Positions 45,872 to 64,000 of a DNA stretch of 64,000 nucleotides are shown here, piece after piece. Under the pieces are notes generated by a model, which worked only from the letters and a program-made list of their open reading frames with translations, searched no databases and was not told the DNA's origin. Positions within the stretch are counted from its first letter, which is position 1. Every line of letters starts with the position of its first letter. A program made the position numbers and the translations under genes. Origin of the DNA: Trichosphaerium sp. ATCC 40318 (taxonomy: Eukaryota; Protista; Tubulinea); assembly GCA_038496445.1 (NCBI GenBank), contig JALMLS010000138.1, positions 62,001 to 126,000 on the forward strand. Direction: 5' to 3'.

Positions 45872-48800
45872 ATGAATAATAGCGAGAGAAAAAGAAGACT
45901 ACCAATAACGCTTCAGGTTAGTATCTGTACCTATATTAAACCAATAGAAACGATTTACAGCAAGCGCCGTTTCGCGAAATGATTTTCTGTTTTTAACTAA
46001 CAAAACATTACAGGTTATTGTCCTAATACTGGCTACAATATGCCTTCAAGGTACATATCAAAGAAAATACAGGCTTTTGATCAATTTCTGTTTATTTTTG
46101 ATAAACTCGCGGGTAAACTCCCTAACAGTTGTAGTGAACGCTGTTGCAAGCATATTAAGCACCAGCCAAGTGTTTTCGAACCCAATACTAAATCCCCCAA
46201 CTTTAACGGCTTCGGGTAGACTTGCTGATTTAACATTTCGTATAACAGTGAACGAGCCATGTCAATTGGTATGTTTTTGTGTAAAGATATTCAACACAAC
46301 GTTTGGTAGAATTGTAAACAAAAAATCACCTAAATTTAGAAGTTGTTTACCTTCTAACTTTATAATCAAAGTCTGGCCCAGCTCCATACGATGATTCAGA
46401 TAATATAACAGTAGTATCAAACACAGGAGATGCTATAGGGCTATTATTCACGTCACAAGACTCAAGTATTCCTCCATCGGGAGAGATAACGAATGTTCCT
46501 TTTCAAATGAACTTTCGTTATACATTACCTAATACACCAGAGAATTATACACTCGTTACTTTCACTGTAAATGAAGGATTTTGTATTTCTCCTGAAGGCC
46601 CCAGTGATGCTTCTTCGGAGTCTCATCCAGTAGATTTCTTACCACCTCAAGTATCTACTGTTGTGGCTCAGCAATTAGTACGACGTTGCTACTGATATCG
46701 ATTTATTGAGCTTTTTTTTTTGTTTGGATTTTTTTACATTGCAATACTAAATTGGCTTAGAATGGAGATCCTATTGTATCTGGTATTGCTGGATCTACTC
46801 TTAAGGTAGTATTTAATATTGAAGAAGAAAATTTCGTGTTGTTCGATGACACCATTGGAGGTGCTCAGAAGGACAACCTGAGAATTGGTAATAGTTAGTA
46901 ATTTTTATCATTCTAATTTAGTGTGTAGTTGACAATGGCGCTGCAGAGACTCTTAATTCTACGGAACTAGAATCGATTGTAACGTCTGTACAAGTTACTA
47001 CTACTACTGTTGCGTTTGATTTGGATTTTTCGGGTACACCACCTGATGACTCTTCATCGTACACGTTTAGTTTAGTAGATGATACTGTAAGTACTTTAGC
47101 TTTTTTTTGTTGTCAGAAGTATGTCATACAGCTTTCTTATACAGTATTTTAGACGCCTCTCACTGATAGCGCTGGGAATACTTATTTAGAAACACGTGAT
47201 GGACAGCGTCTTACTATATTAGTTGATAACAGAAAGCCTGTTCAAACAAGTTTTGTTGCTCTTCCTGATTTTTTTCAAAATTTGGTATGTTATCCCTGAA
47301 TGTTTTCTTGCTTGTTGACTCTTGTGTTAAAAGGGGAAATTGCCAATTCAATTTCGTGTTGTGGCTACCTTCTCAGAAGCTCTTGGAACAATATCAGGAG
47401 CTGATCTGGTATTGAGGTCTGAGTCTGGTGAAATCATTTCAGATTCTTTGAGTACGTACTTGGATGTTTTTTTTTGTTCTTAATTCTATTCTTAGCTACT
47501 GTTGTCCATGCGTTTCAAGGTGGCACGACACATGAGTTTCGTGTTACTGTCTCAACTACAGCTACACCTACAGTGAATATTGGGTTGTATCTACCTACAA
47601 TAACAGACGCTCAAGGGAATCTTTACGAAGACCCAGAATTTGGTATTTTGGGACAATATGTTGACTTGGATCTTATCGTACGTCGATTTCTGATATTAGT
47701 AGTGACTTTACACCCAAAAATGAGAATTTTGGTTTTTTTTGGGAGCTAGGCTTTCGCCTAAAGGAGAAACCTCGCAAAAATAAGTGGTTCATTTCGTCAC
47801 TTTTACTTTCTTTTCGAAAAATAATAGAAAAGAAAACCACATTTTTTTTTTGGTCAATCGCATCGTGGTTAAATGTTGTACTTTGTTGTATTCAGTGAGG
47901 ATGCAAAATAGAGTTTGTGCTTCCTCTTTTAATAATGTAATGGCAACATAATCAACTTTCACGTGATATCTCTCAGTTCGATTCTGAGTTAAAAATAACT
48001 TCTTTGCGCAGCTCGCTATCATCCTTTTTTTTTTGTTTTGTTTCAAATGATGATGCTAATGTGACTTTTAGCTGCCGCTTATTTCCGCAACGAATCCATT
48101 AGAAGGTTCTAAGATACAAGAATCTTTTCCTCTTGTTGTTACCTTCTCTGAGCCCGTAAAGAATGCTCGAGTGGATGACTTGGAAGTTAAATTACTAAAT
48201 GGAACAGAACGTAAGGATTTTTTTTTCATTTGTTGCTTTGGCGAGTATCTTACATTTTCACTTCCTAGTTATTGATGCCGTAACAAATGTGACCATAAAC
48301 TCATTCCAAAGTCAAGTCACATGGGATATTCTCCTACCAATTACTGATGATTACGTAAGTAGTGTTAAATGCTTTTTAAAGACCTTTGTCTTTTTTTCTT
48401 CGTCGTTCAGAGATTCGATTTCTGAGTGGCACTTCTCTGTTGAAACTTATAAACAACTTCAGGACACTGTAACGTTTATTGTACCGGATGTACTTCTTGG
48501 TTCTCAAATTATTGATATTGCAGAAAATCCATTTGTTGGAAGTGTTAGAAGTGGTGGTTCTGTTAGAGGAGAACCTTTTCTTACACTTACAGTCGATTTT
48601 GCACCACCTGTATTTGATCCAAGTATACCTGCCGTTGTTTCTTCTTCTGTTCAAGGCAATCCGTTTAGTCATTCTATTGGATTTGATGAAGATGTTACTG
48701 GCTTGACTGTGGATGATTTTGTGTTAATTCAGACAGATGAAAGGTTTGTTCTTTCTTTTTTTTTCTTCGTCGAAACTCGGCGCCTCATTGGGTTTTCTTT

Positions 48801-51800
48801 TCTTGGTTGTCTTTTGCTGACAAAGACTAGTGGTAATCAACCAAGATATGAAGTGAGTGGTTTCCAAGGATCAGGAGATTCGTACTCGTTTCAGATTGAT
48901 AAGACAGCTGCTGCGAGTGATACTCAAATGTGTCAACGTGGCACAATCGGTCAGGAGACTTGGCCAATTCCTGTCAATGGCACTGCTATCGCGTGTACTA
49001 CTAGACCAGATTCTCCTGTTGGAGGCTACACTGATGTATCTGGAACACTTGACGTGTTCATCAACGGAACTTTCTCTGATACAACTGTACCATCGAATGA
49101 GTTCGTCGATTTAGGTCAAGGCGGTTCAACAAATGTCGTTTATACAATTGATCAAGCTCGCCCTGAAGTATTTGATGTATGAACGTTTTTTACTTGTAGT
49201 AGTGATCTTATTAATGTTGTGCTTAGTGCGGCGTTGAGTTGTTGGATGGAACACCTCAGAATTTAACTGATTCGCTTGGTATTCAATTTGCTATTGTTTG
49301 TCGTTTCTCTGAACCAGTTATTGATGTACCTGGGCTTGTTGCTCAAGTAAGCGATGGTGGAGACCTTTTTGAGAGTGCAGGTTCTTTTGTGAAGAATTTT
49401 ATCAGCACTTCTGATGGGTATTCAACTGGAAGGTGGGCAGTCAATCTAAAGCCAAAGTAAGTTTGTCTCTCGATAGTGTATTTTCTTATTCTTTTCTTAA
49501 GTGCCAACACTACCTCATTTGTATTCTCTTTGCCTGAGAATGAAGTAACTGATCCCCATGGTCTTGGCTTACTTCCTTACTCCGTAACTATTGGATCTGT
49601 TGACACCACGGGACCAATGATAATTGGCTTTCAAAAAGATCCTGTGACCCACCCAGACGGTAGTGTTGGAGATACTGTAGGATCACCTTTTGCTAAACGC
49701 ATGAGATTTCTGGTCAACTTCTCTGAGCCAGTTGAGTGCGTCTATTACATTATAGAAGAGCCATATGTGTGACTATTAATCTGATCAATTTTCATAGGAC
49801 TCCTGAACCTTCAGCGCTTAGTTTTACTGGATTTCAACCAGGAGATGTTGTTTCACAAGAGTTTACTTTGGATTCAGGAAACAGGTATTTTTGGGATATT
49901 GTCATGGCTGATGGTGTTACTACATCATTTACATTGACTTTTCTTGATAATCCAACCGTTTCAGTCCAAGATTTAGGTACCTAAATGCTTATAGTTTTCT
50001 TGAGGTTTTGTTTCTCTTAAATGTTGTTTGGCTAATTTGTTTTCTTTAAAACAGCGAATCCTTCGAATGGGCTTGAGAGTTTTGGTCCCTTGACTTTCTT
50101 TGTGGATTCTGCTGGTCCAGTTGCTATATCTCCTACATCAGGAGCTGATTCAGTTCGGGTGGTATGAGTTTTCAACACGATTGTGGGTTTTCTCTAACTC
50201 GATTTTTCAAAAAAGGGAGGACAAGCCGAGGAGTTTGACTTTCAAGTATCTTTTTCTGAACCGGTTACTGGGTTTGCTGCATCATCTCTGAATATCACAA
50301 AGTTGGATGGAGTATCTGATACAACGAGTTATACTGTTTCAGAACCAGTATCTTCGAGTAAGACTTGTACCTTTTTAAGAGCCATTTTTTTTTTCTTACT
50401 TTATTACGTAGACGGAGGAAATACTTGGACTTGGACTATATCAGGTGAAAACACTCCTTCAGGTGACGGTAGTCCCATACAGATTACCTTTAACGATGCA
50501 GTATCTTCCACAGTTACCGTGAGTACTGTTATTTTGAACTCAACGGTCAACTTGCTCTATCTAACCTACTTTAAAGGATACGACTGAAGAGAATTTCTTT
50601 GAGTCTACCGGATTAGTTTACAATTATGTATTTGATACTGTTGGACCTACACTCACTTCTATCGATGCTACGTCGTCTGAAGGCCCAGGTGGAGCGTTTT
50701 TAAGATCTAACACAAATATGCCTGTCCACTTGACTTTTGATGAAGTCATCGGTGTAGTTGGCCAATCAAATCAAGGAGAGTTGTTGGCCAGTCATTTCAG
50801 ATTCACTGATCCCGATAACAGTAATGCTGATGTTGATGTATCTTCGTACTTGACTATTCAAAATCCAACTTCTCCAAGTCTTGCTGATAATATAAATTGG
50901 AGAGCGGCAATAGCACTGGATGCTGTACGTGGTGGTAGACTTTTTCTTTTCGTACAAATCAAATCAAACTGTTGAAGCATACTTCTTTTGTTTTTTTTCT
51001 TATTACTATAGGATTCTTGTGTTAATTTTCTTTAGAGCGCTCCTGACGGTCAAAGATTGACTATGAATATTGTTTCAGATGATGGACTTGGATCTAATAT
51101 AACAGATGGTCCTTCTGACGCTCCTTTTGCCGCAAACGTGTTTGATTCTGAGAATAGTGTAACTTATACTTTCACTATTGATACTCAAGTGCGTTTTCTT
51201 CTCTTTTATTCTATCACAACACGTGTGGTTTTTTATGATTTCTTATTACTATAGATACCAACTATTACTACTTTCGAGCCTCAAGAACCCGTTGTTTTCA
51301 GTGTTAGTGGACAAGTTGAGAAGAGATCAAGGAAATTCAATTTTTCTGTGGCTCTTTCTGAAGACATTTTCTTTTTGAGTGCTGCTGAAGCTTTACAATT
51401 TATCACGTGTACCAATAATGCTGAAAATGGTCCTTGTCCTAGTAATGGGAGACCAGCCGTATCAGCTGATACACCTGGAGTTTCAGAAGAATCTGGAAAT
51501 TCTTGGACCTTTGATTTGGAATTTCTTGCTTTGGTATGACATTGTGAAAGGTGGATATCGCCTTACTTATTTGTTATTAGGATGGTGAAGTTACTATTGG
51601 TTATGATGCGAGTGTAGCATCTGATAGAGCAGGAAATAATTTAGCTTCAGATACAGTGTCTTACATTGTAGATATTGATGAGACTCCTCCAGATTTATTT
51701 TGTATGTTTGATGTTGTCAACATGTTTGCAGATTTCTTACTTATTTGTTTAGTGCTTTCGCCTCCTCAAAGCGAAACTCAACCTGGTGTCGTGCCTCTAG

Positions 51801-54800
51801 AAATTATACTCGAGTTCAACGAGGTTGTACAAAGTACGATTGCTCACCTTCTTTGCTTTCTTTTAACTAATATTTGGTTAGATGTTGATGCAAGTGATTT
51901 GACAGCTGATAATTCATCTAAGCTTAACTTTGATGGATTTGTTGCTGGTTCGGATGGTAAATCATATACATGGACTTTCAGTAATTTTGTTGAGAATGGA
52001 GACTACCATTTTCAAGTTGCTGACTCTATCTCAACAAGTATGTGATTTTGTTATATGTTTCTTTTCTAATCTCCCTTATTTAGGTATTACTGATGTTGTC
52101 GAGGGTACTGATGCTACTAGTGGATATCCTGGTATATCTTTAGTATACTCTATCGACTCATCGAATCCGTTCATGATTCAGACAGCGAGTTTTCCAAGAC
52201 CTGAGATTTCTTTCTCTAATGGACTTCTTGGTGTTAATAAACAAGATGGTCAGTGGACGTATACAATTCAGTTTTCTGAAGATGTAAACAATGTCACAGT
52301 ATCTGTACGTCAAACTTCTTGGTTTTTGTAAAGCGGAAAAATCGTACTGACGAGATTTCCTTTGACTTACTTTTTTTTTGTGATTAGAGCATTATTTTAA
52401 CACCAGAAAATAATGTGACTGCTACTCGATCTCCTGATAGTGTAATTGCATTCAACGCACAAACATATGCTTTTGATATTCAAGTTGATTGTGAACCTTC
52501 AGGAAATCCTGCAGAGGGTTGTGAGATTATGTACGTGATTGGCTATTTTCATTTTTTTTTTTCAAATTGATGAATGCTCTGATCAAAGAGCATCGGTTAT
52601 ACACCGTTTTAAGTGGTTATTTGGTTTAACCGTATACTGATTTTTTTTCAGCTGGGCGATTTCTGTAGCTCCTGGAATTGAGGATGATTTTGGGAATGAA
52701 CTTGTTGATCCTCAAGTATTTAGATACATGATGGATTTGAAGGGACCTTCGTACCTTATTAATGAAGTCACACCTTCAAATACGACTATAATAGGATCTT
52801 CTATGGATTTCGTAGCAGTATTTGATGAGAAAGTAACAGGGGTTGAACAGAGTTCGTTCAGTACAACAACAACAGGCGATTTAGTTGTTTCATCTATGTC
52901 AGAATTTACAACTGCACCTTCAGAAGGTTTAACAGAGTTCACTTCAACTATCGTATTTGATGATGAGACAGAAGGAACATTTGATATTTGTCTAAGATTA
53001 ACTTCAGGATCAGATATCACAGATGTTCTAGAACCGTTCGTAAGTCTGCTTTCTTTTTTCTTGCTTTTATTTTGTAACGCAGTTTTTCTTGTTAAGTTGT
53101 GTCTAACTTTTGTTTTTGTTTAGTCTGATTTGAATGAGTTGCAAATAACATCAAATGAGTGTATTTTATTCACTGTTGATGTGAAGAAACCTACAGTAGT
53201 ATCAACAGTAGTCAATAACGATAATGAACCGAAGGACTTCTCATACACAGTTGTGTACGTCTTTTTTTTTTTGAGCTTCACATTTTGATTATCCACTTTT
53301 TTTCCAATCTTCGATCTAACAATCAACCACTTAGATTTTCAGAGCCACTTTCAGTTGCAGAAACATCTTTCTCAGCTGATAGCGAGAATTGTCTTGGTAG
53401 TGTAACTAGAGTCGGTACGCACAAACCGAAGCAAGTGCTATTTTTTAACACAAAAATAGTTGAATCTCCAACAACTTATCGATGGGATGTTGAGACTTTG
53501 GATAATATCAACTGTATTATCACAGCTAGTATACCAACCACAAGTGTTCAGGATCTAGCAACTCCACCAAATTCAATGGTACGTAAAGAAGGTTATTTAT
53601 ACTATTTGACAACGTTCTGATTTCTGTTCTTTTTTTTAAAGGCTTCGGCAGTTTCAGAGGCGATTGTTGTGGATACAAGAAAACCTGAACTTGTTTCTCA
53701 GGCTACTACAATACCAAGCGCTTCTGGATCACTTGGTGAATCGTTTGACGTTGTTTTGACATTTAATGAGGCTATTGGCAGCGTCACTACTTCAGATTTA
53801 GTTCCTTCTGGTATTTCTGGAACAACGGTTAGTAGTGTTTCCTTTGCGAATACACTTGGACTTTCTGGACCTTTAGTGAATCAAGCTACATTCACTATTG
53901 ATAATACAGAATCTGGAGTACTTAATCTCACATTACCTGCAGATGGTACGTTAACAAAGAAGGCAGAACTTTCAATATTGTTTTTTTTCTCCAATTAATT
54001 TTTTTCAAAGCTGTTCTTGATGTCGCTTCTGTTCCTAATGGTAATGAACAAATTGAAATCAGTTATACCATTGATGTGTCTCAACCACAAGTGATCAATT
54101 CTTCATTTGCAAATGACGCTCATCTATCAACTGGATTCACGTGGACATTAACTTTTGATGAGTCTCTTGATTCACCGAATGTTACTCCTGTTATCGTTCC
54201 TTCAGATCCTAGTATATCTATTATACAGAGTGGTTTTTCTGCTAATACTATAGATTTTACAGTGGATGCTCAGAGTGGAGTTGATTTAGTTTATAATATT
54301 TCTATTCCTGACAGTAGTGTATCAGACACTGCAAACCCTGCGAACGGAAATGAGGCTTTTGATATTTCCTTTCGTGTTGATACAACTCGACCTACTGTTT
54401 CTTTTGAGCCTACTTATTTGGTTCAGCGAGGGGCCTTTGAGCTTGTCGCTGTATTTTCCGAGCCTGTTAATAATGTCCAAAGTACGTTTTATACGAGAAG
54501 ATGTAGGGTTTTTTTTCTTACTTTTTTCTTAGCTTCTTGCTTGAGTATTATCTCACCTGAATCCGTTGTTATTGGCGCTATATCAATAAATGTTGATCGT
54601 ACTAGATTCACATGGCCATTGAATTTTACAGTTTCTACAAATGAAGATATTACAGCTGATGTACAACTACTGAATAGCGGCTCTTGTAACAACATTCACG
54701 ATGATGCCTCCCCAGGTACTTCTTTTTTCTTGTAAAACCGAGGCAGCTGCAAGACAAATGAGGGCCTTCAAATTGTAAAATTTCGTTAAAATCTCGCAAT

Positions 54801-57800
54801 AATGACTCAGAAAACTGCAATGAATTCTCTTGATCATTGCTAATGCTGCATCATATTTTTTTTTTGTATCGAATTTGGCAACTCCTTGACCTTCTTGTTT
54901 AGTAAATAACTTCTTGGATAATTCTGGTGCTGTCACATACACTATTGACAGAGCACCACCTATTGTTGATGAAACAGCTGGAACAAGTGGTTTTATCACA
55001 CCTTCAGATCCAACTGCTGGACATCCTGACAATGTTGTGTTTACAATGCGTTTTACAGAGGAAGTTCAAAACGTTGTTTCAGAATCTCTTGAACAAGTTG
55101 GTGGTACTGGAAGCTTGGAATCAGCTACTCTATTATCATCACCAGATAATAGAACGTTTTCATGGGTTTTAGTATTTAACGTTTCAGGTCCAGTTGTTCT
55201 GCAGGTAAACGTTGCTTTTTGTTTTTCTTCCCTTTCCTTTTTAGTCCTTTTTTTTTGTTGCTTTCTCGTTGTTCCTTCAGTGCTCCTTATAACCTACGAT
55301 TGAAACTACTTGAATTCTATTGGTTTAGTTTATGAACGATGATTCTTATGTTTGTTTAGATAACTGATGATAATATTGTTGATTTCGCTGGAATTCCAAA
55401 TGCATTTGATGTTTCAAGCGCTTATGAGTTTAACCTCAATACTGACTTTAGACCACCTATAGTAGTAGCCTTTGACCCTCCTGAAACTCAAATTCTGGAG
55501 AATAGTCTTAACTTGTTGGTTACCTTTGACACTGTACGTCTTAACGTCTTTCATTTTTGTGCTGATAGACCCTTGGTTTTCTTTCCTTAGTGGCTTAGTT
55601 GCTCACTAAATATCTCTTTAGGCTGTGAGTATTACAGCAGACCCTATTGTAATTACATACATTGATGGTGCTGAAGGAACTATCATTGGTAATACGTTAT
55701 CTGGTAACGATGGACAATCTCTTTTGTTCCGTTTGGCGTTTACAAGAGGAGGTAATGTAAGCATTGCGCTGGTGCCTGGTTCTCTAAGGGATAGAGCTCT
55801 TACTCCTAACATATACAATAGTGTACGTATTTTTGAACTGATAAATAACTGAACTTATCACGTGCCGTAACATAACACAGTACCAAACAATCATTTTTTT
55901 TGTTTTGTTCTGACTTTTTTCTTATAAATTGTATTTAGACTGACACGTTCAACTTTATTATTGATGATATTTCTGCTCCTATTATTGAGAGTTATACACC
56001 CATTGCTGAAAATAGACCTGGTATTCGTGTTCCTCTTAACCTCACTATGAGCGTTAATTTCGATGAAACTGTTACTGGTGTAACATCAAACGATTTGGTC
56101 ATTTCAAACAGTTTGGCTGGTACTGTAAGGCTAGCTGATGGACAAGATAGTTCAACAGTAGCTCAGAACTTCACTTATGAAGTGAATTTCCAAGAAGAAG
56201 GAGAAGTAGAAATGGTTATGAATGCAGGTTCTATTGTTGATACTTCTGCTCGAACTGGAGAGAATCCTTTTGCTGGAGGAGATCCTTTCTTCTATCTAGT
56301 AGATAACACCCCTCCTTCCTGTTTTTCAACGCCCGTTTCTGGTCAAACATTACCTTCTAGTCTTGTTTGGACTGTTGTTTGCAATGAACCTCTTGTTGTA
56401 AGTCTTCTTTTTCTTTCTTCTTTTTTTTCTTTTTCTTGAAGTCTGACACTTTTTAAGGAACAAGGAGGTTCAGAATTAAGTGCTACAAGCGCTTTACTTG
56501 ATGGTACTGCTGTTGCAAGTGGTTTGCCTACATTCTCGTCGTCTCCTTCAGGAAATACATTCACCTATGAATGGACCTTTGCGTTCAACACATCTGGTAC
56601 TGCAAACTTGTCTCTGGGACTATCTCCGCTAGTTGAAGATACCGTTTACTTCAGAGCAAACCCACTCACTGCTATAACCAATCTATATAACATTGACAGA
56701 ACGCAGCCAGAGATCATTGGTATGTTACTTTTATTTCGCTGTTTCTTTGCATAATTCTTCTTTCTAGATATTTCTCCTCAGGAGAACTTTAACTACCCAG
56801 CTTCGTTCAACTTATCAGTCATTTTCGATGAACCTGTGGCTTCTCTATCAATAGCATCTCTTTCACTATCTCTAGATGGTGCTGTAGGTACAAAACAAAC
56901 CACAAACTTGATTAAACGAAAACTATAAGGGTTACTTATATGCTTTATTTTAGGTGTTGTACAAGACTACTTTTCTCCTGTTGCCAACTCCAGCGATTTA
57001 TCTGCTGGGCCTTATACATGGTCTCTGCAGTTTACTCAGGGAGGTAACATGTCTGCAGAAGTATTAGGAGTAGGTGTACTTGATGCAACATCTAATGTGT
57101 TCATTGGATCAAGACAGTATGATTATCATATTGATTTAACCCCGCCTGTTGCTTCTGTTGCGCCAAGTGTTAACGCAAGTTCTCCTCAAAACATAGGAGC
57201 AGATAATAACTTTACCATCCAAGTAGTATTTGATGAAGATGTGCGTTAAGCAAAAACTTTTGGTTTGACAAAGGAGGTTTTTGCTAAATAACTTTATAGG
57301 TTAACAATGTCGAAGATCAAGTGTTGGATGTAACACCTGACATCATATTGAACAGAGATTTTGAAGCTTTGTCACCTTCGGTGTATCAATGGACTTTTGA
57401 GTTACCTTCAGATGTAAATGAGACTATAGTACTTGGTATCACAAACCATTCTATCAGCGACAACACTGTTGTGCGTTCATCTTTGTTTACCTTTTTTCCA
57501 AGCCTTTTGGATACAAAATTGAGCTTTGCTTTCTTTTCTTATTGTCACCGTGGTACCACAATCACGTGATAATACAATCGGATTTTGTTGTTGTTATGAA
57601 CAAGTCTTGCTTATGATAATGCGTTAGGGAGCACCCAACTTATATGCAGGAAACGCTGAACTTGCTACTATTACACTTGATAATCTTAAACCTACAGTTT
57701 TATCTGAGACTCCTCTTGACCAATCTCGTCAACCAATATCTTTCTTGGTTACTAAAGAGTTCTCAGAGGATGTTATTGGTGTATCAGAAACTGACTTAAC

Positions 57801-60800
57801 TTTCTTGGTTGTATGCAAACACCTTTTTGCGATGTTTTCTTTCCTGACTTTTTCTCCTTTTAGGCGAATCCACCTAGTGTTGAATTATTCAGTGGACCAA
57901 TCCCTAGAAGCTCGTATACATGGAATGTCACGTTCCCTCCAAGTATTGCAACGGAGACTGCTATAATGTCGTTTGACGGTAGAAACGTTACTGATCTGTC
58001 AAACCCTCCAAACCCACTTCAAAATACTTCAGTATCTCTTACTACGTTAATAATTGATAATGAAGCACCACAATTACTCACAAAGCGTACTATACCTGCT
58101 ACTAGTGGGAGAATAAATTCTCCATTCCAAATAGTAGTAGACTTCTCAGAAAACGTAACAAACGTGTCTCAAGGTAGCGCAATTTTTTTTAGAGTATTTC
58201 TTAAAAAATTCTTGCTTATTCCTTCATAGATAACATGGTACTTTCGGGTACCGCTGCATCTCTTTGCAGTGTTGGAGGAACTTTTGGTGAAGGTATAGGT
58301 TCTTCTTTTACATGGAATGTCAGTTGTCCGCCTTCAATTGAAGGTTCTCTTTCATTTAATGTTGTTCCGGATAATATCACTGATAGTTCTGAGTCACCTT
58401 TTGTATTTAATGGAACACAACCAAACTTTGAGTTGGTTGTAGATACTAGAACACCTGTAATTGTCCCAGGATCGTACGTCATGACTACTTTATGTCTTTT
58501 AACAAACCTCTTTTCTTAATTTTTACTAGGGTGAGACCACCTCTTGGTACTGTTTTGAACTTGAACGCTGATCCTATTTGCTTCAATTTATCAGAGGTAA
58601 GTATTGTGTTGTATTTTATGTTAAAAGTTATTCCTCCTCCTTGATTTGGACACGTGGTTATTGCTCTTCATGACTTACTTTTTTTTTTTGTTTTAGCCAG
58701 TTCAAAACCTCAATAGATCTGATGCTTTGTCTATTATTGGTTCTGGTAATCCTAGTTCTTTAGCATTACCAGTTACTGATGGTGTCATGTATTGCTGGGA
58801 ACCTCAGTGGACTCCTAGTCAACAAGAGAATGTACGGCACATAACCAGTTTGATTTTTTGCGTTTAAGGTTCTTACTTTCGTTTTAGGGTACCGTTACAA
58901 TCAGTGTACCTGATAGTGTTGAGGATTTCGCTTTACCACCTAATGTTGTTGATCCATCTTCTCTTGTTTTTGAGTATACAACAGATTTGAAACCACCAAC
59001 AATAACTTCTGTTGAAACAACACCTCCTGGTTCATCACATGGCTTAGCCTTCCAGATGGCCCTGGAATTCAGTGAGCCTGTTACTGGAATTACGACTGAC
59101 AGTGTACCAAGAATATCTCATACAGGCACGTGTTTTTGAGTATTTCGGTGGCAGGCTTTGTCTTTCAAAACGATTCGAATGGAAAAGTCGTTCTTATTCT
59201 TCTTAAGGCACTTCTGTTGTTAGTACACCTGTGTCTTCTGATGGAGGTAAAAAATGGAGTTTCGCTGTTGAGAGTAGTGCCTTTGGAACAGCTCAAATGT
59301 TCTTTAATGGCTCAGGCGTTACAGATTTATCCGGAAATGCACCTGAAGACTCTTTCCTTACAGCAATTAATATCATAGACACTCTTAATCCTAGAGTTGC
59401 TCTTTTTGGTTGCGAAGAGGAAGTAACTCTTGGTGAAGGACCACATAACTTTACTATACTGTTTTCAAAACCAGTACAACCTCAATTCTCAGCAGAACAT
59501 ATCGATTCTACTGGTACGATTTAGCATTTAGAAACAAAAACATCACTACCTCTTTTTTTCAACTTCTAATTAAAGCCACTTTTTTTGGTGTTATCACAAT
59601 ATTTCACACTACTTGTTGCACTGCTTTAATCGTGTTCAAAACTTGTAGCACGCAATTCAGATTGAAACAGAAAAAGTTTGACTTCTTCTTTTTTTTCTTT
59701 GTTCGACTTTTGCCACGTTTTCTTGTTTAACCTTTTTCTCGTTTTTAGTGCCTTTCACGTATCTTGGTTTTGAAATGAGGACACCTTCTGCTCTTACATT
59801 CACTATTCAATTCAATGAAAGTGCAAAAGATGCGTACTTGACAGTAGGTCATAACGCAAATGCTACAATCACAGATTTCTTTGGAAACAACATTGTTGCA
59901 GCAAATTCTACTCTTTTTGATGTAGACATTGAGCCTATTCGTCTTCTTATTGTTACCCCTGATCTAAATAATGGAAGTACGCCTTCTGAGAGGATCACAG
60001 GAAGTACACCAACGCTCTCATTCACGTTTTCGAAGCCTACAACTTTTTCAGCAAGCGAAATTTCACTGCCTGCAAATAGCTCCCTTTCTCTTGTTTCAGT
60101 CTCTGCTATCACGTCTGATTACATAACTTATGATGTCAGCTTCGAGTTTGATGCTAGCAGTATAGCAACATCAAAACGTGCTTCAGAGCAATCTACGGCA
60201 GTTGACATTGATTACAGTGGAGCAATTCCAAACTCCGGAAGTGGTTCTATTTCCATCAATATTGACCCTGTGGATGTTGTTATGACAACTGTACCTGATT
60301 TATCATCTATAACTACTATTGGTGCTTCTGTTAATGTAACTATGGATTTTGGTAAAGATGTCCCAGCTCCTATTGTACGTTTATCACACGAAACACCATT
60401 CCTGTTATTTTCTTAACTTTTCTTTTTTTAAAGGTGTTTGCTTCTTGCTTTAATGGATCACGTTGGGAAATTGATCTTCATTCTACAGCTCCTAATTCAT
60501 ATTTCACATTCACTACACCTTCTCCGGATTCTTTTGATAGATATGTTTGTGGATTAGTCGAGTTTGAAATAAATTTCGGATACTATGCAAATAGGAAAGA
60601 TGTTAATAGACCTGTTTATGGTGGATATGTCATTGATAATGGTAAACCTGTATTGGATGAATTATCAACAGATCAACCTCAAGGTATTGTAAATGATACT
60701 GTGGTTGTTACACTCGCGTTCAGTGAACCCGTCAATGGATTTGGTCCGGATGACATTGAACTCTTCCGTAAGTTGTTTTTTTTTCTGAATTTTGGTCGTT

Positions 60801-61947
60801 TGTTTTTTGGCTTATTGTTTTCGTTAGCTCTTGGATCTTTTGTTATGGGTATAGAGTCTTCAGATAACCAAACATATGAAGTTACTGTGTTTGTACCAAG
60901 GCCAGAACTTGGTAAAAATGAAACGTTTTCTTTCAGAGTGCTTGGCACTTCTACAGTTGATGAAGCTGGAAACAGCTTTGATGTCTCTGCTGGGACATTC
61001 TCAGTTGTTAATGAACCAATAAAACTGACGCCGATAACTGTACGTCTTTGATACAAACTATCACACCGTCAATACTGACTGACTACCATTAGGGCAATCC
61101 TGACAATGATAACTTCCCTTGGTGGCTTATTATCCTCTTAATCGTGATTATAGTCATTCTGCTTTGTCTTACTTGCTGTCTGTTTGTGTGTTGTTTGTAT
61201 GAGAGAAGACGTCGTAGACGTTGTCCTAAGAAGGGTGAAGAAGAAGAAGATAGTGAAGAAGAAAAGACTCAAGATGCAAACGCAACTAATGAAGTAATGA
61301 GTTCTCAGAAGCATAAGGTTATAAACCCTACTCTTGAGTCTTACTCAACAGAAGTATCAGACGATGATGACGAATTATCAGACTCTATAGATAACTATGA
61401 AACAGCCTCTCACTCATCTGGAATGCCTGGTACGCTTCTTTTTTGAGAAAAATAGTTGGGCGATATTTTCTGGAATTTTACCTGCTTTCTTCATATTTTT
61501 CCTCTTTATTGCCTCGTTTTTTTTTCAAGTACTTATTTTATTGTTACAGCATTTGGCAAAGAACATAATCGTGGATGGGCAAATGGCGTCAGGAATAAGA
61601 GTGACAAGAGTGAGTCTGATGATGCAAGTTTTATGAGTTTTTCAGATTACGATGATGGAGGTCAAAAACAGACAGAGTCTACCTCTCATACAGCAACACA
61701 GGAGAATGACGACTATGAATCTAAGGATTATGATTTATCTCCTGGAGGAGGTCGTAAAGATACGTTTGACATTGATACAAGCGAACAGGTTCAAAGCCAT
61801 GTTACAGAACAAACTAATGATTCACGTGATGACGATGAGGATGTTGATAATGTATCAGATGAGCCTGATTCTTTCAGTGAGTATTCAAATACAGAGGGTG
61901 AGTCTTATGACTCTAAAAATGAATATAGTTCAATGACATATGATTAA
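45872..61947 (+). CDS. Giant type-I membrane protein with ~30 tandem bacterial-Ig-like (Big_12/Big_13-like) domains; roughly 60 exons and ~3,500-4,000 aa (estimates)
   Basis: Signal-like VIVLILATICLQ; recurring DxxxP...F(S/D/N)E(P/D)V...(W/Y)xW...V/IxDxxxN units (about 31 FSEP-type motifs counted). TM FPWWLIILLIVIIVILLCLTCCLFVCCLY plus RRRRRR, then an acidic Ser-rich tail ending SMTYD*. The junctions I checked are in phase. Confidence 0.85.
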
Positions 61948-62476
61948 TTTCATGATTTGTAAAACTGTATCTAATGTACTATTTTGTAAATACAATTTTG
62001 TTTAAACCAAAGTTCTACAATATCTATCTGTGCCATTTGTCTATGCAAGTTATGTTTGAAACAGTGAAGTAATAGAAGTTGACTTGAAGAATATTCAATT
62101 TAACATTAAGATGCACCAGAAAATGCAACGACATTGTCTATTTCTAGTAATTGCAAGACTTTCAAGACTTAGTTCAACATGTATCTATTCTCCAATGTTA
62201 CGGTAAATTATGTTTCGCGATCATATGTCTACTTTGAAAAACCCTGACAGAATCGTGTTGTTTGTTTCGGTATATTGATGACTAATGATCATGGATAACA
62301 AGTGTTGGATTAACGATCATGGAGCAATTGGTGGATTTAGCGAAAAAGAAATGAGGTAAATAGTTTATGATACTTTAGTTCAGTGAATCAGTAGACTTAA
62401 AATCGATGTAAGTGCATTCAAAACCAAATTACAAAACCTCAACCAACAACAAACCTCATCTTCAAACAAACAACAA

Positions 62477-62886
62477 ATGAACACAACAATATTATTCGTT
62501 TTGGTGACTTTGGCATTGATACCAATAGCCTTGACGACCCAATCTAAAGACTCTGAAGAAATGCCAGATATGCATGAAAAGAGATCAACTGAGGTATGTC
62601 GACACTTGCTACTTTTACATTGTATTGTTAATTAACATGCGATTTAGCAAGGACCACTGTTGTGTGGTGAAACATGTGATACAAATGGATGGTGTCCTCC
62701 TGGATGGCGTAAACGTGGTCGTGAAAAGAATGGTCAATGTATGTGAAAAATCAAAGGTTGGTAATTCTTAAATACTTACATACGATAGGTTCAACTGCAT
62801 ACTGCTACCCTGGATCTCCATTGTGCTTTCGTATCAGAAGTGATAAATGGTGTTGCTGGAGTGAAGCTGCATGTGGAAGCTGCTAA
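62477..62886 (+). CDS. 101-aa secreted cysteine-rich prepropeptide (exons 62477-62593, 62648-62738, 62789-62886)
   Basis: MNTTILFVLVTLALIPIALTTQSKDSEEMPDMHEKR-STE|QGPLLCGETCDTNGWCPPGWRKRGREKNGQ|CSTAYCYPGSPLCFRIRSDKWCCWSEAACGSC*. Two GTATGT..TAG introns in phase; AATAAA at ~62916. Confidence 0.85.
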
Positions 62887-62944
62887 GATCTTGCACTCCA
62901 ATAATGTAAAACTAAATAAAGTACCCAAGTTTTACTATTATTCG

Positions 62945-63390
62945 TTTTCATAGTTTGGTCGCATGGTCAGTTCCAATTTCAACAAGAAAGGTATGTTGTG
63001 AGTCAACCAAATAGACAGCGCATGGCAATATGATTGCCTGTAAAACCAATGAGAGTAGGCAAAATACATTAGCAATCTATGTAATTGAGCTTTAGTAGAA
63101 AACGGTTTACAATAAACGTGAAACACACTGTTCAATCGCTAAAATAATGTTCAACGTAGCGCTAAAATAAAGCAACGCAGACTTACGTTCACTTTTCAAG
63201 CAAGTGACACCACATCCAGGCAGGGCGTGGCATCCAAATGTTACAACAACATATGGTGATAGAGCGAATGGTATAGCCACGTTTAATTCGCAAAACAGCA
63301 CTAGTCCAGGCCATAACCGAAGGCAATGATTGTCACCTCCTTTTTGTCCTTATGCCATTGAGTGCTACCTTGGTATTCCAATCTAATTAG
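62945..63390 (-). pseudogene. Possible decayed multipass membrane protein fragment
   Basis: Hydrophobic segments EVTIIAFGY/GLVLFCELNVAIPFALSPYVVVTF and ANVFCLLSLVLQAIILPCAVYLVD across a splice-like gap, with stops and shifts. Confidence 0.2.
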
Positions 63391-63635
63391 CTCAGTGAGT
63401 AAACTATGAGCATAAGAAGTAAGTCAACTATTTTTTGTTGGCAAGTATTGAGCCGACCCATTTTTCTGTAGTGATTGAGAATGTAATAGTCCATTGGCCG
63501 AAGAATTGTGACTGATATTTATGCTTCATTTTGATACAACAAGTTAGTTAGTAAACTGTAGTCTGATTCTACTTGTTAGCACGTTTATTGATTCTTTACA
63601 ATGATAATTGGTACAACAAGTATGGCTTTGCGATC

Positions 63636-64000
63636 TTAGCAGCTTCCACATGCAGCTTCACTCCAGCAACACCATTTATCACTTCTGATGCGAAAGCACA
63701 ATGGAGATCCAGGGTAGCAGTATGCAGTTGAACCTAATAAAGGTTAGTACTAAGAAGTTACCTACCAACCTTTGATTTTCACGTACATTGACCATTCTTT
63801 TCACGACCACGTTTACGCCATCCAGGAGGGCACCATCCATTTGTATCACATGTTTCACCACACAATAATGGTCCTTGCTAAATCGCATGTTAATTAACAA
63901 TACAATGTAAAAGTAGCAAGTGTCGACATACCTCAGTTGATCTCTTTTCATGCATATCTGGCATTTCTTCAGAGTCTTTAGATTGGGTCGTCAAGGCAAT
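63636..64000 (-). CDS. Second, inverted copy of the cysteine-rich prepropeptide (5' end beyond the window)
   Basis: Same exon structure and identical protein over the visible part; stop at 63636-63638. Confidence 0.85.

Follow-up and report, generated by a model that had tools for sequence, protein, structure and literature searches.

What use would a marine amoeba have for a small cysteine-rich peptide encoded by two mirror-image genes whose coding differences are all silent? The question is raised by the end of a 64,000-nucleotide (nt) stretch of DNA, hereafter the window (contig JALMLS010000138.1, here C40, positions C40:62001-126000), from the genome assembly of Trichosphaerium sp. ATCC 40318 (70.3 Mb, 642 contigs, 36.7% GC), in which two three-exon genes, copy A and copy B, lie tail to tail. 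They belong to a large family whose predicted secreted core, with ten cysteines, has been kept nearly invariant. The published draft genome of Trichosphaerium is described as comprising 70.87 Mb in 710 scaffolds with 37.69% GC, 7,489 ORFan genes and introns averaging 75 nt, and cysteine-rich peptides are not mentioned in that paper (PMC10521059); no paper linking Trichosphaerium to cysteine-rich peptides of this kind was found.

Copy A lies on the forward strand (62477-62886) and its predicted product has 101 residues, including ten cysteines and four tryptophans, while copy B is its mirror image on the reverse strand, running from 63636 to beyond the end of the window at 64000. An initial annotation of the window had proposed such a tail-to-tail pair, and both three-exon models indeed close with GT..AG introns (54 nt for the first and 50 or 53 nt for the second); the CPPGW, KWCC and RKRGR motifs that it listed, together with all of the cysteines and tryptophans, are found in the spliced translation of copy A. 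In this gene, exon 2 terminates in phase 1, within the codon of the fourth cysteine, and the TAA stop codon occupies 62884-62886. When copy B is completed from the genome, the two copies differ at six codons (for Phe, Val, Ile, Leu, Cys and Arg), every one of them synonymously; as had also been claimed, they share the same intron 1, their second introns have diverged (with insertions and deletions), and homology ends 4 nt past the stop codon. The track of open reading frames (ORFs) is misleading at this locus, again in keeping with the annotation, since the long ORFs at 62574-62771 (+) and 63679-63951 (-) cover intron 1 and exon 2 in the wrong frame.

The splice model can be judged from the family as a whole, for which 42 complete three-exon models were built. 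Their introns range from 44 to 77 nt in length and differ by 15-19% in sequence. Both introns are bounded by GT..AG in 39 of the 42 models, a GC donor being present at intron 1 in two others and the intron-2 donor being lost in one (L019; contigs and loci are given here by handles beginning with C and L), and the reading frame closes after splicing in 42/42. The restoration of the frame despite varying intron length provides evolutionary support for the splice model and argues against the wrong-frame ORFs.

Selection on the product was measured in the 36 copies of the main group, using the 62-residue product of exons 2 and 3. These copies contain 35 distinct core DNA sequences that specify only six peptide sequences, and the same core is encoded by 27 of the 36. 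Variable sites number 7, 2 and 33 of 62 at the first, second and third codon positions, respectively, and the mean proportions of synonymous (pS) and nonsynonymous (pN) differences are 0.24 and 0.007, giving a ratio of 0.03. The minimum numbers of changes across the group are at least five nonsynonymous and at least 42 synonymous, where about 79% would be expected to be nonsynonymous (binomial p ~8e-24); the earlier suggestion of a selected peptide thus stands, with the mature part under very strong purifying selection. Within the same genes the leader is less constrained, with a pN/pS ratio of 0.11-0.26 against 0.01-0.04 for the core. To judge from these codon patterns, the analysis shows a family that is real, translated and strongly constrained. 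One segment of the core behaves differently at the nucleotide level: the 24 nt encoding NGWCPPGW (window 62684-62707) do not differ among 37 of the 45 copies, even at synonymous positions, whereas third positions vary freely elsewhere in the core. This identity could stem from a hot spot of conversion, a preference for certain codons or a constraint at the RNA level.

The initial annotation had two copies to go by and regarded them as a duplication for dosage. The amplification is real and much larger, the genome holding about 45 copies on about 20 contigs. Degenerate codon patterns for KWCCW[S/N]EA and for NGWCPPGW each gave 45 exact matches in the genome and none in the reversed control, while searches of the genome with DNA and, exon by exon, with protein returned at least 50 candidate loci. 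The gene is intact from ATG to stop in 42 of 49 copies; the decayed ones include two with stop codons (C601 and C185), one without one of its splice donors (C36) and one reduced to exon 2 (C32). A few of the short contigs match loci on large ones at 94.6-99.7% identity (C584/C15, C518/C99, C480/C152 and C524/C224) and may represent alternative haplotypes, so that a cautious count would be 35-40 loci. No intron-less retrocopy was found when the genome was searched for both spliced junctions. At three further places (L039, L040 and L041; C25:340996, C3:769035 and C131:123566), degenerate remains of exon 3 and of the pro-piece, without exon 2, lie in a dispersed repeat that also bears a lysine-rich open frame; some repeated element has apparently captured or copied the peptide gene.

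The recurring genomic unit is a head-to-head pair, usually composed of one gene with a type II leader and one with a type I leader (both described below), whose start codons are a few hundred nucleotides apart; the only spacing measured, between copy B and the next copy on C40, is 356 nt from ATG to ATG. Such units are joined tail to tail into alternating arrays, with strands + - + on C40 and - + - + on C149 and C12. The nucleotide distance between cores is 0.026 within arrays and 0.057 between arrays, and in pairs whose leaders differ, the nearest core is often that of the partner. Local gene conversion therefore acts in addition to purifying selection. Copies A and B agree with this picture: they form the arms of an inverted repeat (225 nt at 98% identity and 135 nt at 90%), and both the 98%-identical 5' arms and the identical intron 1 are compatible with local gene conversion.

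The third member of the array begins about 0.4 kb beyond the end of the window (C40:126329-126798; L011:2830-3299), carries a type II leader and is placed head to head with copy B. Its core is intact and a 1-nt deletion lies a few codons past the canonical ATG (L011:2906), so that the frame is kept only through an upstream ATG situated in what is promoter sequence in other copies; this copy may have been disabled recently. The same order of genes (type I forward, type I reverse and type II forward) is found on C99 (L014:1359-2306), where the spacer is inverted with respect to that of C40 (62887-63635), an arrangement that recombination between inverted gene copies would produce. Stop-ridden remnants of type II leaders occur in tail-to-tail spacers at C99:12786-12866 and C518:928-1008 and are, by their sequence, probable traces of lost family members.

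The annotated prepropeptide layout, with a hydrophobic leader, an acidic pro-piece, a Lys-Arg (KR) site and a cysteine-rich core, is recognizable in the predicted products. Two types of leader occur, one of 39 residues with a pro-piece ending in EEMPDMHEKR (type I) and one of 34 residues with a pro-piece ending in ELSERAKR (type II), and chimeras between them exist. The hydrophobic core of the signal peptide spans 15-17 residues with a peak Kyte-Doolittle value of 2.8-3.3 (3.3 in copy A, whose leader is found in identical form in 11 copies), and small residues at positions -3 and -1 (VQS or TQS) were located by eye. The acidic pro-piece measures 9-13 residues, and the KR pair followed by S/A-T-E is kept in 42/42 models, in both leader types, while other leader residues vary. 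Alignment of 41 upstream regions revealed that each leader type has its own conserved upstream region. Those of type II start with a CACGTG palindrome (for example, L011:2822-2848), and an ACTTAAA(T) motif is common to both promoter types, about 55-95 nt before the ATG. Neither leader type was found on any other gene in the genome, which rules out a superfamily in which a shared leader is combined with variable cores. As to the enzyme that would cut at KR, three to four loci score above the P_proprotein cut-off as kexin/furin-type convertase candidates; one of these, L047 (C36:151711-154881), is a multi-exon convertase gene with Peptidase_S8 (33 bits) and P-domain (69 bits) matches and an SWGPNDDGKT motif, and its product is a candidate processing enzyme for the ten-cysteine precursor.

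The predicted core after KR comprises 65 residues (7.2 kDa, pI ~8), of which eight are basic, six acidic and four tryptophan, with the cysteine spacing C3C5C14C4C6C8CC5C2C. Its longest loop is basic and its dibasic pairs are kept in the three subfamilies as RKRGREKN, RKRGREKR and RRRGREKR; a second cut in this loop, yielding two disulfide-linked chains as the annotation had suggested for RKRGR, is possible.

The annotation had regarded the family as one that it did not recognize, and homology searches agree with this, every search with exon pieces having come back blank. The queries were halves of about 30 residues, from which distant relatives could escape. Pfam contains no family matched by these pieces at E values up to 10, and the open frame that includes exons 1 and 3 (L016:3718-4122) has no homologue among 5.8 billion protein clusters. 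JGI metagenome and viral contigs contained pattern matches and no relative, and the spliced junction of exons 2 and 3 was not found in the JGI metagenome contigs. Several candidates were set aside. Matches in the Protein Data Bank (PDB) to AVR-Pik and MBD6 reflect chance PPGW similarity (E ~1); an exhaustive phmmer search with exon 3 against 1.84 billion representatives gave three matches to internally repetitive proteins, one of them with RCC1 repeats, in which weak stretches had been summed; and a feature search of the ESM Atlas returned lantibiotic, cyclotide and spider-toxin-like short cysteine peptides, scoring 0.76-0.84 and hence under the 0.85 threshold for a lead, which reflect composition only. 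The family appears to be lineage-restricted, and it illustrates how short multi-exon genes can be absent from the protein collections searched.

The known disulfide-rich frameworks compared here do not accommodate the core. It has a CxxxC spacing and no CxC, while the CS-alpha-beta defensin framework combines six to eight cysteines with both; the ten-cysteine TIL domain likewise includes a CxC, and neither half of the core gave a Pfam match to it at E values up to 10. Three-finger domains of the Ly6/uPAR type begin with LxCxxC and end with CC-x(4-5)-C-N. The present core begins with C-x3-C and ends with CC-x5-C-G-S-C, without the asparagine, and its exon pieces have no such match in Pfam or the PDB. 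Nor does it qualify as a saposin-like SapB domain, having ten cysteines and no Pfam match with the exon pieces. The amoebapores and naegleriapores, which belong to that saposin-like group and are the antimicrobial peptides known from amoebae, resemble the family in being small disulfide-containing peptides that amoebae secrete or store in granules, but they have six cysteines and an all-helical fold of 77 residues, in contrast to a core with ten cysteines that is rich in Trp, Pro and Gly. To our knowledge, hardly any secreted disulfide-rich peptides have been described from free-living amoebae apart from such saposin-like pore formers.

Other parallels are found in layout and in mode of evolution. 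Cysteine-rich prepropeptides processed by Kex2 or furin, such as the KP6 killer toxin, and likewise the yeast alpha-factor precursor and the Ustilago repellents, have the layout predicted for the amoeba products, with a signal peptide, a short acidic pro-piece, a KR site and a small secreted product, and a kexin-type convertase gene is present in the amoeba genome. The amoeba family shows no sequence similarity to them, differs in cysteine framework and carries one core per gene rather than tandem copies, with about 45 genes for the same product. Disulfide-rich host-defence peptides include CS-alpha-beta defensins, big defensins, macins (among them the ten-cysteine theromacin) and the ten-cysteine chitin-binding tachycitin. 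Such peptides share with the predicted amoeba product a length of 60-75 residues, three to five disulfides, a mildly basic character, a prepropeptide origin and often amplified genes, but the amoeba cysteine spacing fits none of them, and no Pfam or PDB match to them was obtained with the exon pieces. Most of these families vary in the mature part, the opposite of an invariant core behind a variable leader. The family also resembles the histone and ubiquitin families, which evolve by birth and death under strong purifying selection and are often arranged as divergent pairs: it likewise occupies dozens of loci that have diverged at synonymous sites and yield an identical product, forms head-to-head pairs that share a short upstream region, and undergoes local gene conversion. 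Histones and ubiquitin are, however, intracellular housekeeping proteins, and the amoeba product is an orphan peptide predicted to be secreted.

As to function, the annotation had proposed an antimicrobial, predatory or signalling peptide. Taken together, high copy number and invariance suggest a product needed in bulk that fits an unchanging partner. The reading tentatively preferred here, to which a probability of about 0.4 is assigned, is that of an abundant extracellular effector used in defence or feeding, antimicrobial or directed at prey, with a target that does not change. The signal peptide would be removed in the endoplasmic reticulum, a convertase of the kexin/furin type would cut after KR, and five disulfides would form in a peptide secreted in bulk; the two leader and promoter types would place the same product under two expression programmes. 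Several points weigh against this interpretation. The invariant core and faster-evolving leaders are the reverse of what is typical of arms-race antimicrobial and toxin families, which weakens a simple analogy with toxins or antimicrobials, and the net charge of the core is only about +2. The signal peptide and the cleavage sites are predictions made by rule of thumb. No spliced product was encountered in the protein collections with the exon-piece searches, by which the gene itself was also not matched, and the evidence assembled so far does not appear to separate a defensive from a structural role.

The structural role would be that of a structural, adhesive or carbohydrate-binding unit of the extracellular coat, needed in large amounts and limited in its variation by self-assembly or by contacts with ligands, which is somewhat unlikely although it deserves serious consideration. 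Aromatic residues beside cysteine and Pro-Gly (GWCPPGW, AYCYPG and KWCCW) are in its favour, many sugar-binding mini-domains placing Trp or Tyr in this way; some 45 copies with an invariant product resemble bulk structural multigene families, and Trichosphaerium carries a fibrous test (PMC10521059). The exon pieces, however, resembled no known carbohydrate-binding or matrix domain, and toxins, antimicrobial peptides and hormones are the more typical carriers of a pro-piece cleaved at KR. The hormone-like prepro layout with KR would suit a signal, namely a pheromone, a hormone or a ligand of the growth-factor kind, which a cut at the internal RKR/EKR loop might convert into two disulfide-linked chains: an invariant ligand suits a fixed receptor, and the dibasic sites of the basic loop are kept in all three subfamilies. 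Since signals acting at low dose rarely require so many genes, this explanation is considered improbable.

Two further explanations concern the nature of the sequence rather than its role. A member of a known disulfide-rich fold family could be present in disguise, whichever its role, having been missed because only 30-residue halves were searched; short cysteine-rich domains often escape sequence methods, and it was clusters of this kind that the ESM Atlas returned. On the other hand, neither Pfam nor the PDB yielded a match at E values up to 10 other than the chance PPGW similarity, the three hits among the representatives were repeat-protein artefacts and, compared by eye, the cysteine spacing fits none of the frameworks considered, so that a disguised relative is judged to be rather improbable. 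Hardly credible is a dispersed inverted-repeat DNA element with exon-like pieces that are open by chance: inverted arrays on many contigs and the decayed copies might suggest it, but the excess of third-position changes, the conserved splice sites, the proportion of intact models and the conservation of KR and of the cysteines demand selection at the level of translation.

A bolder reading, which is doubtful as a whole, would see in the family an orphan five-disulfide fold produced from about 45 genes that are kept identical by histone-like purifying selection and driven by two alternative leader/promoter modules: the main secreted product of the organism, representing either a class of defence peptide new for amoebozoans or the unit of the coat, and possibly matured at the conserved basic loop into a two-chain form. 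That about 45 genes are given over to one invariant peptide suggests that its role outside the cell is a major and highly specific one in this marine amoeba, which has been little studied. The family is also a clean natural example of dosage amplification in a predicted secreted product, on which purifying selection and local gene conversion act together, and a core of this size lends itself to direct synthesis and testing.

The features of the locus are collected in Table 1.

Table 1. Positions in the window of the elements of copies A and B and of the sequence between them.
Feature	Position	Strand	Remarks
Type I upstream region and 5' leader, copy A	62360..62476	+	41-sequence upstream alignment; blocks conserved per leader type
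ACTTAAA in copy A upstream region	62396-62402	+	
Copy A exon 1	62477..62593	+	39-residue leader: predicted signal peptide, acidic pro-piece, KR, then STE
Copy A intron 1	62594..62647	+	54 nt, GTATGT..TTTAG
Copy A exon 2	62648..62738	+	First core half: 3 Cys, NGWCPPGW, basic loop RKRGREK
Copy A intron 2	62739..62788	+	50 nt, GTATGT..GATAG
Copy A exon 3	62789..62886	+	Second core half: 6 more Cys, KWCCW, C-terminal CGSC, TAA
AATAAA, possible poly(A) signal	62915..62920	+	29 nt past copy A stop
Tail-to-tail spacer	62887..63635	.	749 nt, non-coding; paralogous spacers 78-86% identical, indel-rich
AATAAA	63584..63589	-	46 nt past copy B stop
Copy B exon 3 and stop	63636..63733	-	
Copy B intron 2	63734..63786	-	53 nt, GTACGT..ATTAG; diverged from that of copy A
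Copy B exon 2	63787..63877	-	
Copy B intron 1	63878..63931	-	54 nt, same sequence as in copy A
Copy B exon 1	63932..64000	-	Truncated by window end; ATG 48 nt beyond, C40:126048

Neither a coding signal nor an RNA-family match was found in the spacer (62887-63635); the AATAAA that follows copy A is conserved in the spacers of C149, C518 and C12. At the other end of the gene, an A/C-rich stretch precedes the ATG of copy A. Directly upstream of copy A lies a putative giant surface-protein gene (45872-61947), the C-terminal exon of which is rich in Asp, Glu and Ser and ends at 61947.
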